A stretch of 63,761 nucleotides of DNA, filler included, from Choristocarpus tenellus KU-1152 (Eukaryota; Protista; Phaeophyceae): NCBI GenBank assembly GCA_964200185.2. It is 11 parts of 11 records of this genome, joined end to end, with 100 filler letters (N's around TTAATTAATTAA, not from the genome) between each part and the next. Parts side by side here need not be neighbours in the genome. Positions count along the whole stretch, not along the records: positions 12,234 to 17,139 come from CAXNAD020012582.1; 10 more parts are not named here. One strand, written 5' to 3'. Under the pieces are notes generated by a model. That model was not told the origin of the DNA. It made no database searches and saw only the letters and a program-made list of their open reading frames with translations. Both the position numbers and the translations under genes were made by a program. Each line of letters begins with the position of its first letter. Positions within the stretch are counted from its first letter, which is position 1. Below are positions 3,161 through 17,244 of this stretch, piece by piece.

Positions 3161-3914
3161 CACCCCGGTTCTCTCTTCACCTACCGAGACCAGGATTCCC
3201 CACAGACTTCGTCACCGTCCCACCTGGTGAAGGACTCGTTGCTCTCTTCCTGCTTTCCCGAGGTGACAAAGACTGCAGAGCGGTGCTCCGACATGGTTGA
3301 AGATCCAACCACTTTTGTGCGGTAATGCTTTCAATGCATCTTCTCTCAGCATCGGCGTCGCAGCCCTGTGATTCATTTCGTGATTTGATTATGCTACTTT
3401 CTGTACGACACTATTCATTCACACTATCTCATCACCTAACATAGCACTGAGTGTCACACGGTACTTGCTTTCCGTCGCCTCTGGACAAACCGGGTGCCAA
3501 AGTTAGATCTAGGGGGCAGAGTGGCTCTCCTTGTCTCACCGCCGTGGTTCTTGTTGCTGTGTTGGTCACGTGTGTTTGTGCTCACAGCCTATCTGCAAAT
3601 GGCGCTGAAAAGATGTCTGAAACTCTTGGGGGGGTTTTCAGTATCACCACACGAACCAAACTTGGGCAGCGGCCTATTCCGCATCAGGTTTTGGGGGGAG
3701 TTCAGCCAACCACTTCATTCTTGTCCGTTTTGAAGTCGTGACCTTCAAAATTGCCACAGAGATATTCCACCACGTTTTTGATCGGGATAATAGCTCCCAT
3801 TCCTCTAAGCCTGAACATTCGTGGATACAAATCTTCAAAAGATCATGTCAAACTCTTTCATTTGATATATATGCTAGCGCGCCACTAGAGTCAGTGTGAA
3901 CAAGGGACAAACGC

Positions 3915-4708
3915 ATGGGCCTCGATACAACCTCTGGAACCAGCATGCCAGATCTCCCCTCAGGAATTCCAGCTCACAGTCAGCAGATCCCTGGGGGGGG
4001 AGGAGGCCCTATCCAACAGGTGACCAGCCGTAGGGTGCAGGAGGCAAACGTGGATACCAGACATGCCCGTACCTGTCCCCCTGCCCTGGGGCAGGTACGA
4101 CAACACACTCCCGTGGTAAAACACCTGCACCAACTATGTAAGGGTATGGGCATCCCTTGCACTATGGAGGACGGTAGCCCTTTCACTGTGGACAGGAAAT
4201 TCTGCATGGACCTGGTGTTCCATGCAGGGGCACTAGCAGATGCCGGAACTGCTCCCTAGAGGGACAAAGGTCTTCTGCTAGACATCACCTTCGCAGAGGT
4301 ACAGGCAATCTCTCACCTAACCCACTCACCCACTCATCCGCCAGCAATGGTGTAGCTGCTGCTGCAGCAGAGGCGCAAAAGCGCACCCACTACAAGGGCT
4401 CCCTTGATCCTCGTAATTATGACCTCAACACCTTTGTGATTGAACGTTTTGGGCACCTCGGCAAGTAAGCGGAATGCTTCCTGGACGAGCTGGCTACTCA
4501 CATGGTAGGGGGGAGAGGAACTGGAGGATATTGCAAGAAAGGAGTGGTTAAATCCCAGCTACGCCAAATTGTTTCGGTGACTAAGCTAGTGGCATTGTCT
4601 CGACATGTCATGCACTTCAAGCTAGAGTCATCAGGGAGATGGGCACAGAGGGGTTTAATGGATTCTGAGGATGCCTCCCTAGCTCCCCCCTCCAGGGCAC
4701 AGGAGTAG
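3915..4708 (+). mobile_element. CRE-like non-LTR retrotransposon 3' end: zinc knuckle plus restriction-like endonuclease (disrupted)
   Basis: DTRHARTC, QH..VV, MDLVF, LLLDITF, AEAQKRTHY, FVIERFGHLGK in the canonical RLE order, with stops and frameshifts. Confidence 0.85.
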
Positions 4709-5309: not shown

Positions 5310-5531
5310 TTCTGCACACTTTTCTACAATTTGTCGGACATTTCCATGATATGCCCGTTTTTCATCTCTCAATTTACTTATTTATTCTGTTTAATGAACT
5401 TCTCAGACCGATTTGAACGTTTTCACCACAATTCGGAAACCATTCTGAACGCTTTTGAAAAAAGCACGATCCTTTCCCATTTCTCCTTGTATCACTAGAA
5501 TGCAGAACGTACCTCTCATTTACTTTGACTC
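5310..5531. mobile_element. MITE family 3, partial (left boundary uncertain)
   Basis: Ends GTACCTCTCATTTACTTTGACTC; the body resembles the reverse complement of 53284-53420. Confidence 0.55.
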
Positions 5532-7527
5532 TCGTTCAGAAAGAATCAATCCTCTACTGGAAACAAATGCGCTTTTGCAGAAACTCATTAGATGATGTCG
5601 TGTGAAGCTTTGCCAATCTGTACACACTAAGAGAACCTACACTCAATCTTCACTTACTTGAGACTTCATTCTGGTCCTATGAATATGCCATCTTTAAACA
5701 AAGGACCAAATACTTTGCCACAATCCCTTTGTATTTGTACACATTTTCGCGGCTCCAGGATTGCGATACCTTCGATGTTCAGAGTGAATAACCTGTTACA
5801 TCACTTTGAATGTTAAACTTTATCACAGGTCCCACTTCCTGGTACATCATTAATTACCTCATTGATTTAGTAAGAATGTAATCAGAGACGATGTTGACAA
5901 CAATTATCCTCCTCAACAAAGTGTACAAAAGAAATTTCTTCCTGCTAGGTGCAGGTGTAGAGGTGGTGTTCCTCTTTTTGGTACCAATGCTGCTTGTCAC
6001 CAGACCAAAAATGATTACGAGAGATCTCCCACCCGTTCTACTTCCATTTCAGTAACGTTAATAATGAAACTGGAGGCTTGCTTGGAGTTGGTTGGGTTGT
6101 GAGTGAGGGCAATAACAGTGGCGTTTGGAATGTGCTTCACCGCATGCAGGTTAGCTAATAACAAATGCGGAGATCTATATCTGCATAAATAAGAGTCGCT
6201 ATTTCAATGATACCCTATTCCAGAATTTCATTCCCATCTTCATACAACTTCTTTCCTTTATTTTTGCACTCACTACTTTTCCACATGCACACACAATCAT
6301 CGTTGTTCTTCAATGGTTGAAGGTCAGTGTTTCCTTGCAGTAATGTGTTGGGTTCATGTGGATTTATGCCAGACATGTCTTCAAGGATATCTAACTTCCA
6401 TGATCCGAAGTCCATGCTGCAAGTACCTCTATACATTGTGCACCTGTACTATCCTATCCTGTCCATCACTTTATCACAATAATCAAGGAAAACAAACGAG
6501 TTGAGGGTTTATCATGCTATTGGCACTGAAACGAGTATCGCATGATATTAAAAAAGCGGAGCTTCAAAGGATAGCTGAACACCAGGACTGAAAAGCAAGA
6601 AGGAAGTGCAATCTGTTCTATTGCAAGAGTGGTTAGGACGAAAAGTAATGCAGTCCGTAGTGCCTCTGACAACAGCTCAAAATAATCTCAACGCCGCAGT
6701 GTCAATCAGAAAAATATGGAGACATTGAAATTGTGGTGGGTCCAGAAAAAGAGACACGAAAATGCGTGAACAGGTGGTTACTGGGTCAAAAAGCAGCGTG
6801 GGCACAAGGTGGCTAGGGTAGAGGAATCAACCACAGACTTTCACATTTTAGGCTGCAAATGATAGTGTAAATGCAATTCATACCTCTGTGGCGGTAAAAA
6901 ATATGGTTCACTACATCAACAAGAGGGGTCTCATTGAGCGTGTTCAACTTTTTTTCTTTTATCTGTTTATTTTTGGGTCGTAACAAAATCCAATACTGTA
7001 AAAATAATAATAGTAGTAAGTTTGATAGGCAGAGGGAGACACATGCCAATAAAAATACTTCAAATTCCGCAATTATTCTAGAACCAACTGCCAACGTGAA
7101 ACCAGCAACACCAAAGCAAGGCCATCCCTTGCCTGTATGTCATAGCAGAACACAAAAACCAAGTGCACGAATACTCTTGAGACACTATATTCTAGTGTAC
7201 ATTAGTCTTGAGGGTCCCAAACTCCAGGTCAAAAGGAATCCAAGGAATCAGTACATGCAATACTATGAGAAAGGGAGGAGAGAACAAGCAGGTAGAAATT
7301 GAATGCTCTAAAAGAGGGAAAACAAATCACTTGACAAACCTTGTCTTGCCAACAAAGGACGGGAGTTAAGAATTTATAATACATACTCAACGCAAGTGAA
7401 ACACCCACTACACAAGTACGCATGCACTAATATATCAAGGGGATAACCAAACTCTGACCCTTTCGTCCCCTGAGTTCATACTGGACAAGCTAATGATGCT
7501 GAGGGTAGTGGCAAGAATGTGAAGTTG

Positions 7528-11469: not shown

Positions 11470-12133
11470 TTGATGCAAAATGTCAGAGCGGATAATAATA
11501 AAACTAATATACTAAATATACCTTATGATAGTAAGGGCATATAAAAATATAATAAAGGCATACTAATAACAATAATAAACAATATTCCAATGATACCGTT
11601 ATTGCCGAATAGAGTATACCGCTATACCGATTAAGGTTGTGTTCTGAGAACTTTGGTTCGATTGTGTGGAAGATATTTTATTTCATTTGGGCTAATAAGA
11701 CATGTATTATTATTATCCCTCTGACATTTTGCAGAATATTTAATATATTTTATTATTATACCCTTTGACATTTTGCAGATGTGTCAGGGGGAAACCAATG
11801 AAAACTATATGATCAGTGGTTTCCACATTTACAATGTTTTATAGTGTTCTTATTTATATTATTATGCCCTCTGACATTTTGCAGATGTGTCAGGGGAAAA
11901 CCAATGAAAACTATGGAAACCAATGAAAACTATATACATATGTGTATATAAAATTGTCCTAAACGACATAAATAGTTTTAATTGGTTTCCCCCCATACAC
12001 ACCTGCAAAATGTCAGAGAGCATAATAATAATATATATATTTAGGACATTTTATGTATATGTATTATATTATTATGCCCTCTGACATTTTGCAGATGTGT
12101 CAGGGGAAAACCAATCAAAATTATATACGTATG
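11470..12133. repeat. Cluster of at least 6 full or partial ~55-bp units (ATTATGCCCTCTGACATTTTGCAGATGTGTCAGGGGAAAACCAATGAAAACTATA) in both orientations
   Basis: Forward copies near 11708, 11755, 11860 and 12068; inverted copies near 11475 and 11972. Confidence 0.85.
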
Positions 12134-12233: not shown

Positions 12234-12259
12234 GGTACAAATAACACTATGTATTTACA

Positions 12260-12748
12260 TCAAACCCACCTCTCCACGCCGGAGGATACTCTTGCGTTGT
12301 TAGGTGTACCTTTGCAAGCGTCGATGACATGATTGGATATTCCGAATGATGCCTTGAAAAACTGCATACAAACAGGAATGCCGGCCGCGAGCATAGATCC
12401 GCCTCCAGGTCCCAACTTAATGACAGGTACATGGTCACCAACAAAGTGCTTGCGATCGCGGTGGCTCTCACACGCCCGGATGGTGTCCTGCTCTTTGGCC
12501 AACGTACGTGCAAGGAAGGACTCGCTATCTGCCGCGAACTTCTTCACACAGGCTAAGCGCTTGCAGCAGTCACCTTGTTCGTTGACCGGGATGGGTTGAG
12601 CCCATTCTCGGCGAAGCTTGGCGCCGGTCGCTGAAGCGTCATCGGTAGAAAGCTCCAGTGCATCATTGTTGGCGGGCTGATGACGGTGCAACGCAGGGGG
12701 CGGTGCAGGTGACAAAGCCACCCCCTTGCTGTGGGAGCAACTGTCATG
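12260..12748 (-). mobile_element. Sola-like DNA transposase, N-terminal exon (probably frameshifted near the start; the remainder lies beyond the contig end)
   Basis: CCKRLACVKKF followed by GIPVCMQFFKASFGISNHVI resembles the Cys-rich plus VCxxFFxxxxGIS N-terminal pattern of Sola transposases. Putative donor AG|GTGGGT near 12268. Confidence 0.6.
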
Positions 12749-12774
12749 GTGTTTTCGGGCAAGATGTGGTCTTT

Positions 12775-14085
12775 GGTCTTGGGCAGTGAGAAGGTCTAGG
12801 AGTGAATTGAATTTGAAGCTGGGGGTACGATGTTTGAGTTTGAAGAGATCCATCAAACCAAAATGAAATCCGTGTTCTGGAAAACGCGTTTATTCTCGCT
12901 GTGATGAAATAAAAACTAGATTCTAATCTGGTTTCAGGCAACAGTCGGTCTTGGGCACAATAGAAGTGAATTTGAAGCCGGGCGTATGAATGATGTTTGA
13001 GTTTCGGGCGATCTGTCGGATCACCATGAAATCCATGATCCGGAAAATACATGCATTATGGTTTTTAGAAATTATAAATTCGATTATATTCGTAATTTCA
13101 ATTAAAAAAAATACAAAGCACATACTTAATTGAACTTGTACGTTTCAAATGTTCCGAAACTAAAAGGTCACAATAAACTGATACCCTTTAATTGTTTTAA
13201 ATACAAAATCTTAGATTGTTCGACATTTGTATTTATATATTATTTATATATATATAAATACAAATGTCGAACAATAGCGAACTTTGAGTTTCGTGCGATC
13301 CATCGGACCACCCGAAACCCATGAACCCGAAAATACGTGCAGTATGGTTTTTAGAAATTATAAATTCGATTTTATCCGTAATTTCAATTCTTAAAAGTAC
13401 AAAGCACATACTTAATTGATCTTGTACGTTTCAAATGTTCCGAAACTAAAAGGTCACAAAAAACTGATACCCTCTAATTGTTTTAAATACAAAATCTTAT
13501 ATTGTTCGACATTTGTATTTATATTTATAAAAATAAATATAAATACAAATGTCGAACAATAGCGAACTTTGAGTTTCGTGCGATCCATCGGACCACCCAA
13601 AACCCATGAACGGGAAAATACGTGCATTATGGTTTTTAGAAATTATAAATTCGATTTCATCCGTAATTTCAATTCTTAAAAGTACAAAGCACATACTTAA
13701 TTGATCTTGTACGTTTCAAATGTTCTGAAACTAAAAGGTCACAAAAAACTGATACCCTCTAATTGTTCTAAATACAAAATCTTATATTGTTCGACATTTG
13801 TATTTATATATATATATATACAAATACAAATGTCGACAAAAAGCGAACTTTGAGTTTCGTGCGATCCGTCGGACCACCTGAAATCCATGAACCGGAAAAT
13901 ACGTGCATTTTGGTTTTTATGAAATAAAAATTATATTCTATTCTTAATATCAACAAATATAAATACAAAGCACATAATTCGTTGATCTAATACGTTGAAA
14001 TGTTCCGAAACGAAAAGGTCACAAAAAACTGATACTCTCTATCTGTTTCAAATATTAAATCGTAGACTGTTCGATATTTATATCT
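12775..14085. repeat. Tandem array of ~285-bp units (about 4.5 copies) with long hairpins at 13215-13275, 13501-13560 and 13786-13839
   Basis: Unit recurs at 285-286 bp spacing; hairpin arms ATTGTTCGACATTTGTATTTATATA / TATATAAATACAAATGTCGAACAAT. Confidence 0.95.
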
Positions 14086-14224
14086 TTAAGAACACATTTA
14101 TCAACGGAAAGAGAAATCTGGGTTCTTTGGGCACCGACCGACCAGATGAAATAAAGCAGCACCTCCCAGCCCTTACTCCTCATTTCCATTCCTTCCCTTC
14201 TGCACATACCACCAGCAGTTCTTT

Positions 14225-14483
14225 GAGTGAAAGTATCTTAGAGGGTACGAGTTTTGCCCTGTTTGTCCATTTGGGGCTTGACTTCCCATGGGTTTTTTAT
14301 GACATTTTCTTACTCCAAAGTGTTTAGGAAGTAGGTAAAATGTATACGTCATGAAAACGCGTGCCCGAAACATAGATATTAACACCTCCTACCAAACACG
14401 ATAGCCAAAATTACATCAAAATCGCAACATTGGATTTTGACCCCCAAATGGACACGGCTCTACCCTCTAAGATACTTTGGCTC
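14225..14483 (+). mobile_element. MITE family 1, complete (259 bp)
   Basis: ~23-bp TIRs GAGTGAAAGTATCTTAGAGGGTA / TACCCTCTAAGATACTTTGGCTC; 4-bp TSD CTTT. Confidence 0.95.
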
Positions 14484-14523
14484 CTTTCTTATCTATCCCC
14501 ATCATACCTTCCCAATCTTTGCC

Positions 14524-17041
14524 ATGTCCAACATTCGCTCAGCAACAACCCCCCTGGTGTCACTGTCAAGTTTGACGCATGCCAGACCCATGCACTCGCT
14601 CCCACCTTCTCTTCACTCAGGGGCTCTTATAGCATCGAAGGTGGGCTTGGTTGTGGAAGATCATCCCCTGCTTATAATGTACAAGATGAGGAGGGGGGGG
14701 CGCCCTCTTGCTGGCACTGATAACCATCTCAGATGCCACCAGGACATTATTCTTCTCGCGCACAACAATGGGACAGAGTTCACGTGCAACAAGCGAGTCA
14801 CTGTCGACGACATCTTTGGCCACGGGAGTGATCCATCTCCTCCGGTGCTCCAAACCATGTTTGACGTTGAGTACCAAGGTGCTGCGACGGACATCCCCAT
14901 TAGGGTCCTCCACTTCCTCGTTAACAGGTTTGTTAATTACGCCACAAACGCCCTTCTTCATGGGAGCAACGACTTTTTTTGTATAGGTGTAGATCATCGT
15001 TAAACAGTAACGCAACAAGCTGGGTGACGGTTGAGGAGCATCAAACCATACCATGAGTGTGTTTCCCTGAATCAGTACGTTACGCGTCAAACCGCACCAT
15101 GAGTGTGTTGCCCTGAATCAGTACGTTACTCGTACAGTGCCATATGATGAATCCGTGCGCAATACAATGTACTCCTCGGGATAATTTACGACCTGCCCTC
15201 CTATGATAGGTACATGAATCCTGGGGACACCGTCATCTCCTTCAGCGCAGAGAGGCACAACGTGACAGAGGCGGCCCTTGAACGGAGCAGGAGGGTGGAG
15301 GTGTTCGTGTCTAACGTGGCATCAAAGGACGATGTGAAAGAGAAGATGGAGACCTCCTTCGGCCGAGCCTACAAGGATGGCAAGTGGAAGGTAATAAGGG
15401 TGTGCTGGCTTTTTTCCATTTCTTTCCAACTTATTGTCTATCTTTGTTCGCTATGGATAGGTGTCGGGCGTGCGATTGTGGTAGTGATGTTTCCTTGTCT
15501 ATGTTTACACATTGCTAACATGGTGCACGCAGTGACCCACACCACAAACGGAAATCACGAGACCCCAAGACTTTGTGTGTGAGTGTTGGTATGTCGTAAT
15601 GTCTTCCTTCCCCACACGAAAAAACAAACGTGCTGCGGTACACCTCAAGATCTTGAACCAGCGCCGGAATAACCCCTATGTACGTGATGTAACCTTATCG
15701 CATAGCAAACACTTCAATGCCACATGGTTGGGCTGTCACATGTACGCACATGATGTTGCAGGTATCCACGTCTCTCGTTCAAGAACGCGTGATAGGTCCT
15801 TCCTGCCTGCCGGAAGCCTTGGGGCAGACCCTCGTCCCAATTGAGATGCAGTGATGTTTTGCTGAGGCCGTCAATCCTCAGGGAAAGGCAATGGGACGCG
15901 ATGAGGCGACTATTTTCGTTGCGAAGATGGTGGCGGCGGACTTCGGCTACCAGATCGAGGTGAATCTGGCATAGAATGCACTTCGTAACATATTTGTGAA
16001 GAATGAACGGCAGAGTCACGCTCTTGGCACGCAGTAGACACGTTTTTTTTCTTCCCGAGTCTGAAATTATCTAATGCGGCACCCAAATACGTTGCGTAGA
16101 AGACTATGGGCCTTGCAGAGAAGTGTTGGATCCGTCGTTTGTTCAACGTTTGCCACAATAAGGTTACCGTTTTTGCACCACCTTCGGTTGCGCACCTCCA
16201 AATCAAATCCATTCATGAATGATCGAACTCTAGCCCCCCCCTCCAACACCCCTCCACCCCCCCCAATCCTACCGCCGTCTTTGTCTTCCGCAATGCTCAG
16301 CCGTGTGCAAGCTCGTCCTCGAATCCCGCCGAAATGGCCTTATTCGCGCTTGACGGGAAAGACTACAAAGTTGGTGGAAATGACCTCCCTTCGTGGGGTG
16401 ATCTCCAAGTGTGCAACTCTCGATCAGAGGCCTTCCGTTCGATCTCTCTTGACGACCAAGAAGAACAGTGCATTCGACTGCTTCATGTGGCCAACAACAA
16501 CCAGCTCAAGCACATGCTTTCGCCTGGAACGGAGGTGTGTGGGCCGCGCGCAGAGCTCTACTTGCGCGTGGCAGCCACTTGCCCTCTCTACTACATGCGT
16601 TGGACCGAGAAGGCAGACGATGCCATCATTGAATTCACGTCAAACGTTCCGCAGAGCGGAAGCCATGATGAGGTCCTCCTCCCCTTCTCCCAAGTTGGCC
16701 CTGGGCAGATGTTCGTCACGCCCGTAGTCAGGAGGGTGTGCAAACCCCGGGCAAAGAATGACACAAGATCACCGTTCAACATGCTCCCGGGTCTTACGAT
16801 AGTGCATTCTCGTGGGTTCAAAGTGCGGGATTCGGACTCGGACTTGACGCCAATCACCATTAGAAAGCGCAAGTGTCCCTCTTCCCGCACAGGTGGAAAG
16901 GGGAAAGGTCGCAAGGTGCGGAGGGTCGCCGGTGATTTTGCGCCGGAAGACGAGCCAGAGTATGTCAGCGACACGGAGGAGGACGAGGGGGAAGAAGAGG
17001 AGGATGAACAGGAGGATGAAGGGGATAACGAAGAGGAGTAA
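14524..17041 (+). pseudogene. Four-exon gene (14524-14927, 15210-15390, 15762-15959, 16301-17041; ~507 codons, one premature TGA at 15852): degenerate N6/N4 DNA methyltransferase-like domain, SET-like domain, basic NLS-like patch and acidic tail
   Basis: Phase-consistent GT-AG introns. TDIPIRVLHFLVNRYMNPGDTVISFSAERHNVTEAALERSRRV aligns without gaps to the TQKP..LL..LI...NPGDxVLDPFAGSGTT..AA.ELGR pattern. GYQIEP...MALFA..KDYKVG...WGDL...CPLYYMRW...MLPGLTIVHSRG follows SET motif order. Confidence 0.65.
15041..15133. repeat. 46-bp tandem duplication in intron 1
   Basis: TCAAACC..ACCATGAGTGTGTT.CCCTGAATCAGTACGTTAC occurs twice. Confidence 0.9.
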
Positions 17042-17244
17042 GAAGAGGATTGAGACAGGGGGCGGGGAGGAGGGGAGGGGGGGAGCGGCAGGGGGGCACA
17101 CACGTTGGCAAATGAATGATTGACCAATGGCAAACAGAGNNNNNNNNNNNNNNNNNNNNNNNNNNNNNNNNNNNNNNNNNNNNTTAATTAATTAANNNNN
17201 NNNNNNNNNNNNNNNNNNNNNNNNNNNNNNNNNNNNNNNGAGAG

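Follow-up and report, generated by a model that had tools for sequence, protein, structure and literature searches.

Contig CAXNAD020012582.1 of Choristocarpus tenellus KU-1152, an early-diverging brown alga, is probably a dead, rearranged and internally deleted piece of a giant cut-and-paste DNA transposon of the Sola-1 type. The contig occupies positions 12234-17139 (4.9 kb) of the 63,761-nucleotide stretch of DNA that was analysed (hereafter, the window). It carries the 5' exon of a transposase on the minus strand and, pointing away from it, the last exons of an accessory gene on the plus strand, with a tandem array and a miniature inverted-repeat transposable element (MITE) in between. An initial annotation had considered this architecture to be undescribed, but a transposon of the same kind was published in 2025. 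Sola1-1_Ec32, a 21.5-kb giant Sola-1 DNA transposon of Ectocarpus, encodes on the strand opposite its transposase a 1104-amino acid accessory protein with ParB-like and DNA-methyltransferase parts, which has been suggested to bind and modify its own element (Di Natale et al. 2025, Genome Biol 26:320, PMC12477816). The window copy is a decayed member of this already known kind of element and not a new system.

The contig belongs to a highly fragmented assembly of repeats with high copy number, and every part of it was highly repeated in three sequencing runs. Its coding-like ends have a G+C content of ~50-57%, and the block at 12950-14100 one of 27-33%. Scans for Rfam families and for tRNA genes both came back empty.

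The Sola-1 transposase exon and its accessory gene

An exhaustive HMMER search of 1.84 billion representatives with the minus-strand open reading frame (ORF; 12270-12747) returned 63 homologues, nearly all of them short predicted proteins, and every homologue for which the source was looked up originated from a brown alga (Ectocarpus, Pylaiella or Cladosiphon). The alignment (A1) revealed an invariant or near-invariant block, CC..L.C..F...EQ...DRK.FV..VP...GSM.AAG.PVC..FF..FG[VI]S, followed by KGTP.ARASS...R. Most of the homologous exon-1 products end (...ASSxxxR) where the window has a splice donor (AG/GTGGGT, 12270/12269), beyond which the start of transposase intron 1 (12234-12269, minus strand) runs off the piece. 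Two gene models, one from Ectocarpus (P0052) and one from Cladosiphon (P0053; BLASTP against the minus-strand ORF, 8e-15), extend past exon 1 into a second region ending GDFM.C..C, which is found on the same strand and in the same order as exons in loci L004 (Ectocarpus) and L009 (Pylaiella). The downstream exons of these two loci carry DNCxxENKNN...GHTHxKIDQ and match the Pfam family DUF7869 (E = 6e-22 and 1.5e-21, respectively). All three blocks are united in the curated transposase of Sola1-1_Ec32 (Sola1-1_Ec32_tpase #DNA/Sola-1, printed in the supplementary material of PMC12477816), which reads ...LRCCRLNCIELF..., ...EDRKRFVTEHVPLAKLSQGSMIAAGTPVCNRAF..., ...GDFMLCKICTLLK..., ...DNTVAENKNN...MVGHTHIQIDQIFS... 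and was compared with these blocks by eye.

Because of the shared motif block, the continuation of P0052 and P0053, the DUF7869 exons and the match to Sola1-1_Ec32, the minus-strand ORF is identified as the first exon of a Sola-1 transposase. The initial annotation had called it a Sola-like transposase 5' exon, and in this it was right. The homology concerns the N-terminal exon only; the DD(D/E) catalytic core lies beyond the contig, since the piece ends within intron 1. The frameshift suspected earlier is likewise confirmed. MTVAPTARGWL, the conserved start (ATG at 12747-12745), is not in frame with the remainder of the exon, and contigs of other copies have one extra base at 12713/12714; the window exon is thus a pseudogene with a 1-bp deletion near 12713. 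Matches of residues 81-104 of the ORF to the ankyrin-repeat proteins P0020, P0067 and P0068 were spurious, and a PDB sequence search with the ORF gave chance-level matches only.

The pairing of the two genes was examined in related loci. L010 contains transposase exon P0014, the closest relative of the window exon (61% identical), and, 675 bp away on the other strand, a ParB-like ORF. In L006 and L011, too, this ParB-like exon stands head-to-head with the transposase 5' exon, the spacing being 650-675 bp over the three loci. Furthermore, the Ectocarpus locus L005 contains imperfect inverted repeats of ~350-420 bp (5437-5792 and 11528-11855), between which lie a transposase remnant and, on the opposite strand, the last two accessory exons. 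This arrangement is present in a longer form in L004, and L001 shares its right end; the right inverted repeat in Ectocarpus lies ~1 kb past the accessory stop. The opposite-strand, head-to-head arrangement is thus found in the window, in L010, L006 and L011 and, as remnants within one inverted-repeat pair, in L005, and both genes can be assigned, from these sequence comparisons, to one transposon family. At the family level, this agrees with the earlier proposal that the two genes travel together as a single transposable element.

Given the inverted repeats of L005, L004 and L001 and the head-to-head 5' exons of L010, L006 and L011, an intact element would consist of an inverted repeat, the leftward transposase, ~0.7 kb of intergenic DNA, the rightward accessory gene, ~1 kb of flank and a second inverted repeat. 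Its transposase would comprise an N-terminal CC..C/helix-turn-helix-like exon, the GDFMxCxxC region and a DUF7869-type catalytic core. The multi-exon accessory gene would encode a protein of ~1,100 amino acids, in which a ParB-like start is followed by a region resembling methyltransferases and by an acidic-tailed C-terminal domain. All copies examined are deletion derivatives of differing kinds, which are usual for DNA transposons. The window copy would likewise have arisen from a two-gene element through an internal deletion that removed all DNA between the transposase 5' flank and the intron preceding the fourth-from-last accessory exon, leaving neither gene functional. The gap between the two remnants is occupied by a lineage-specific array of 285-bp units resembling MITEs, together with a short spacer of unique sequence and the nested high-copy MITE.

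The window copy and Sola1-1_Ec32 have much in common. The N-terminal transposase block (CC..C..F, EQ, DRKxFV, GSMxAAGxPVC) is the same and is followed, in relatives of the window transposase, by GDFMxCxxC and DNxxxENKNN...GHTHxxIDQ. In both cases there is an opposite-strand accessory gene with a ParB-like start, the inverted repeats are long and imperfect, and copies are often pseudogenised, deleted or interrupted by nested insertions. However, the window copy comes from an early-diverging brown alga, retains only transposase exon 1 and the last four accessory exons, and has a 285-bp array and a MITE between the genes. Moreover, the published accessory protein is described as having a recognisable N4/N6 methyltransferase domain, whereas none is statistically detectable here.

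The two-gene Sola-1 element with its transposase and ParB-like accessory gene, known from Ectocarpus, is therefore also present in an early-diverging brown alga, and its occurrence in both lineages suggests that, among brown algae, the two genes have long been associated. Of the short "unnamed protein products" annotated in genomes of this group, many are first exons of the Sola-1 transposase or pieces of the accessory gene. What the window copy itself adds is a decayed, early-diverging member of the family, a copy-specific palindromic array and a Sola-compatible MITE. As a dead and truncated copy, it is a poor place for studying the function of the accessory protein, and the value of the result is modest.

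One further locus, L012, was fetched as an Ectocarpus locus with ParB-like and downstream exons and turned out to hold a solo ParB-like fragment. An unrelated DDE_1 (pogo/Tc1-like) transposase gene is encoded 9 kb from this fragment (L012 1-1139, Ectocarpus sp. CCAP 1310/34).

The truncated accessory gene and its predicted protein

All three junctions of the plus-strand gene (14927/15210, 15390/15762 and 15959/16301) were confirmed. The NCBI gene models P0011 and P0012, which represent Choristocarpus paralogues, share the joints ...LVNR/Y..., ...KWK/VSTS... and ...QIE/.RASSS..., and contigs from sequencing run X3 lack exactly the introns 14928-15209 and 15960-16300, which have GT..AG ends. Searches and folding were carried out on single exons, and wherever a sequence had to span a junction, the models P0011 and P0012 alone served. 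Counting from the 3' end of the gene, exon n-3 (14621-14927) corresponds to exon 1 of the initial annotation minus an unconserved 5' part, and has tblastn matches in L001, L002, L003 and L008 (57-81%; alignment A2). Exon n-2 (15210-15390) contains NPGDTVISFSAERH, is 63-83% identical to its relatives (alignment A3) and has the junctions of gene model P0012. Exon n-1 (15762-15959) is interrupted by an in-frame TGA (15852-15854). The last exon (16301-17041) encodes a conserved domain of ~190 amino acids, a basic RKRK stretch and an acidic tail, and has 12 homologues in Choristocarpus, Ectocarpus and further assemblies. All four exons are conserved in the Ectocarpus locus L001 and in L002, a locus from an ENA assembly. 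The 3' flank (17042-17139) still belongs to the repeated element, with blastn similarity to L003 reaching the end of the piece.

The premature TGA noted previously is real: the codon is R (CGA) in both P0011 and P0012, and the window therefore carries a CGA>TGA change. Two Choristocarpus paralogues, L003 and L008, share 84-88% identity with the window copy, in exons and introns alike. The gene in L008 is broken by a frameshift and a stop codon, and one exon of L003 is interrupted by a MITE. The plus-strand gene is thus multi-copy and decaying. The initial annotation had named a single-copy syntenic host gene as fatal to its own proposal; several decayed paralogues were found. Intron positions conserved between Choristocarpus and Ectocarpus would be in keeping with an ordinary host gene that lies beside a transposon fragment by chance, as would the somewhat better conservation of exons 2-4 than of introns between the paralogues (90-94% vs 80-89%), although exon 1 (83-85%) is not better conserved. 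Yet the several decayed paralogues per genome are located on short repeat contigs and, in Ectocarpus, the gene lies within an element bounded by inverted repeats, beside a transposase remnant, so that a host gene is extremely unlikely.

The gene is, however, far from complete. In blastn, the window is similar to L008 over 14558-16598 (L008 1983-4006), and the similarity starts abruptly ~60 bp before the CAG acceptor at 14620. Positions 14558-14620 are an intron remnant preceding exon n-3, with a polypyrimidine tract and acceptor at 14604-14620, and 14558 is a rearrangement breakpoint. Upstream of the homologous exons, L001 has conserved plus-strand blocks at ~1080, 1729, 2249, 2727, 2916, 3252-3500, 3737-3993 and 4303-4632, which are collinear with L002 and L008 and, for the first six, also with the minus strand of L010. 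None of these at least 8 further conserved exons of the relatives is present in the window. Because the upstream exons are missing and the similarity to L008 begins so abruptly, the contig holds only the last four exons of a gene with at least 12, and the ATG at 14524 is fortuitous. The divergent 4-exon gene annotated previously was therefore correct in its junctions but not in being taken as complete. Summing the exons gives ~1,100-1,200 amino acids for the full accessory protein, in agreement with the 1104 amino acids reported for that of Sola1-1_Ec32. A word-based protein search with P0012:1-150 returned only P0012 and P0011.

Several features of the gene were recorded in passing. The first intron of the piece contains a 46-bp unit in two tandem copies (15038-15129, 91% identity). 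One exon missing from the window (L001 3737-3993, L008 110-481) is cysteine-rich (C..CSITHMG.CA...C.KCP) and has the look of a small zinc-binding module. At the C-terminus (16870-17041), GGA/GAA-rich simple repeats encode a basic segment, RKRK...GKGKGRK, followed by a long acidic D/E tail; together, these resemble a nuclear-localisation signal plus an acidic tail and are conserved in the Ectocarpus homologues.

The exon series of the full-length gene starts, in L010, with an ORF (3070 to 2450) that displays a ParB-type signature, VRPLS...SIREVGW...LDGAHRISAL, which recurs in the relatives as VRP...SIxxVGW...DGxHR. In a comparison of protein-atlas features, this ORF was nearest to ParB_N clusters (score 0.95). 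The PDB profile search with the ParB-like exon gave chance-level matches only, its AlphaFold2 model (8 alignment rows) was unusable, with a predicted local distance difference test (pLDDT) score of 41.4, and tblastn of this exon and of P0012:1-90 against plasmids returned nothing significant. The window itself lacks the ParB-like domain according to tblastn. A Pfam search of every window ORF and exon, of P0011 and P0012 and of the upstream exons of relatives detected no domain other than DUF7869 in the transposase core of L004 and L009, and PDB sequence and profile searches with the last exon, exon n-3 and exon n-2 produced chance-level matches only.

The initial annotation had described the gene as a fusion of a pseudo-DNA-methyltransferase and a SET-like fold. 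For the first part, we built a methyltransferase profile from YhdJ of E. coli together with seven N6/N4 methylases of phages. Three exons, namely h (absent from the window), n-3 and n-2, gave non-significant matches that were collinear with it on motif IV/post-IV, VIII and I, four pieces in the right order and spacing. In exon h, KL[AV]IVSI[GA]AE aligned with the profile consensus DLIVTDPPY, and ...HGRLYPDGTIAL with krvLkdeGalyl; in the window, HLRCHQDIILLAHN of exon n-3 aligned with ryeskfeiillfsK, and NPGDTVISFSAERH of exon n-2 with negdivlDpfaGsgT. In this weak alignment, every copy seen has SI[GA]A in place of DPPY and S[FL]SAE[RK]H in place of FxGSG. If the alignment is right, it weakly suggests that the catalytic tetrad and the S-adenosylmethionine (SAM) loop have been replaced in all species seen, as would fit a pseudo-methyltransferase. 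This part of the earlier description is thus weakly suggested by collinear motifs; the matches are not significant, and about one third of the methyltransferase-like domain lies in an exon absent from the window. The SET-like fold found no backing: the last exon had no Pfam match at E<=1 and no PDB sequence match, and the AlphaFold2 model of its domain (12-row alignment) was unusable (pLDDT 36.6). Sub-threshold leads from atlas features of this exon (0.86-0.88) pointed to fungal proteins, some with HNH_2, not SET.

ParB-like and N6_N4 methyltransferase domains (PF02195 and PF01555) are also fused in proteins of bacteria, phages and plasmids. These resemble the full-length accessory gene in its inferred domain order, and motifs IV, VIII and I are weakly matched in collinear order. 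The accessory gene differs in lacking a significant sequence match, in its many introns and in an additional C-terminal domain, which has an acidic tail.

The nested MITE and the continuity of the copy

Between the array and the plus-strand gene lies a 259-bp high-copy MITE (14225-14483; inverted repeats I11 and I12), which had previously been overlooked. It has 23-nucleotide terminal inverted repeats (GAGTGAAAGTATCTTAGAGGGTA) and is flanked by a 4-bp target-site duplication, CTTT, at 14221-14224 and 14484-14487. Further copies are located within the second-to-last exon of L003 (~1283-1540) and, in reverse orientation, in L008 (1659-1919), so that 4-bp duplications were seen at three independent sites (CTTT, A[C/T]TT and ATTG). 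In three runs, the word depth of the MITE was ~100-fold above that of its neighbours and changed sharply at 14224/14225 and 14483; MITEs joined to one another in tandem were also seen. In contigs from runs X1 and X2, position 12919 is joined to the left end of the MITE and position 12927 to its right end, which places the same MITE at this point in another copy of the transposase 5' flank. Target-site duplications of 4 bp are the product of Sola elements, and the MITE may be a non-autonomous element mobilised by Sola. The spacer at 14091-14224 would have been contiguous with 14484-14557 before the MITE insertion, as the CTTT duplication indicates; in blastn, it did not match the paralogues or any of the fetched loci.

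The MITE also bears on whether the two halves of the contig belong together. The left part (transposase exon and array) and the right part (accessory 3' exons) could derive from different copies, joined by ectopic recombination or mis-assembly, given that the contig is only 4.9 kb long, that each of its segments is highly repeated, that a MITE of ~100-fold higher depth separates the two parts and that the similarity to L008 begins abruptly at 14558. However, the matching CTTT on both sides of the MITE is that of a true insertion into continuous DNA, and therefore argues for a continuous contig at this site. Furthermore, both parts come from one element family, the intact members of which have the orientation seen in the window. 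We therefore regard a chance or artefactual juxtaposition as unlikely.

Several points nevertheless weigh against a fragment of a single Sola-1 element. For the window copy, the inverted repeats, the duplicated target site and the catalytic exons of the transposase all fall outside the 4.9-kb contig, from which its membership in one single element therefore cannot be shown; joins in the contig other than the duplication-flanked MITE site could be assembly chimeras. The accessory genes of L001, L002 and L008 have no transposase exon within 2-8 kb upstream. The plus-strand gene was equated with the Sola-1 ParB-like/methyltransferase accessory gene from its position, strand, estimated length and ParB-like first exon, not from a direct comparison with the 1104-amino acid protein. 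Finally, the ParB-like domain in the first exon of the relatives was not significant in Pfam, and our methyltransferase profile had no significant match to any exon, with scores near 0 bits.

The tandem array

Upstream of the minus-strand gene, Tandem Repeats Finder reported 3.8 copies of a 285-bp period at 12996-14083 (89% matches, score 1623), and a repeat search resolved four in-register 285-bp copies at 12954-14090. The hairpin array of the initial annotation is thus real, palindromic and built of the 285-bp unit, but it measures ~1.1 kb in total and not 1.3 kb. Its units are AT-rich (G+C fraction ~0.29-0.32 vs ~0.5 in the flanks). The ~25-nucleotide ends of each unit are inverted copies of each other, so that a palindrome is formed at every unit junction, as exemplified by perfect 26-nucleotide arms at 13215-13240 and 13250-13275. 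Folded as single-stranded DNA, one unit was much more stable than shuffled sequences (z = -5.3). The transposase 5' flank (12748-12953; repeat families D3, D4 and D6) includes a shorter, degenerate proto-unit (12791-12953) immediately upstream of the minus-strand gene, recognised by alignment of this unit (u0) with the array units, and the array apparently grew out of this flank. Like MITE-derived tandem arrays and satellites, the units have inverted ends and are arranged head to tail with a palindrome per junction; unlike them, the array consists of four units seen at one site only.

No tandem array was found between the two genes in L010, L006, L009 or L004, or upstream of the accessory gene in L001. 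As no relative examined has one between the two genes, the 285-bp array is lineage- or copy-specific. The check proposed in the initial annotation, conserved divergent linkage together with the array across brown algae, therefore gave a split outcome: the divergent pairing recurs in L010, L006 and L011, but the array is not conserved.

The Arabidopsis VANDAL transposons, which belong to the Mutator-like superfamily, carry VANC anti-silencing proteins, and the initial annotation had proposed an analogous new two-gene system in which a cargo protein of pseudo-DNA-methyltransferase and SET-like folds targets the hairpin array of its own element. VANDAL elements are likewise DNA transposons with an accessory gene beside the transposase and tandem repeats inside the element. 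However, they belong to a different superfamily from Sola-1, evidence for homology is absent, and the window array is not a conserved part of the element. No VANC-like link between the accessory protein and the array was found, nor do the tandem repeats form a conserved target inside the element. Self-targeting could still draw on the membership of both genes in one transposon family, on the real and palindromic array, on the weak collinear beta-class methyltransferase motifs, whose replaced catalytic and SAM motifs fit a pseudo-enzyme, and on the established binding of ParB-type proteins to palindromic sites. Against it, none of the related loci examined has the array between its genes, the window accessory gene is a 5'-truncated pseudogene without the ParB-like part, its only recognisable DNA-binding part, and there is no SET signal. 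Moreover, the architecture and the action on its own element are not new (PMC12477816). We consider this system highly improbable, and the claim that the cargo acts on its own array finds no counterpart in the relatives examined.

A related possibility, which we judge improbable, is that the accessory protein is not a writer but a ParB-guided DNA-binding or reader pseudo-methyltransferase, in which DPPY and FxGSG are both replaced and which is nevertheless conserved under purifying selection in Ectocarpus, L002 and Choristocarpus. The 285-bp palindromic units by the bidirectional promoter would then be a parS-like landing pad amplified in the Choristocarpus lineage.

A motif seemingly shared by the array units and the intergenic repeats of L006, CCGGAAAA..CG, failed a pattern count and was dropped. 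At their outer ends (5428-5470 and 11822-11889), the long inverted repeats of L005 are themselves palindromic, TGTTCGATAAAG...CTTTATCGAACA. The palindrome arms of the window array have a TTGTTCGA core similar to these repeat ends, a resemblance that may be coincidental.

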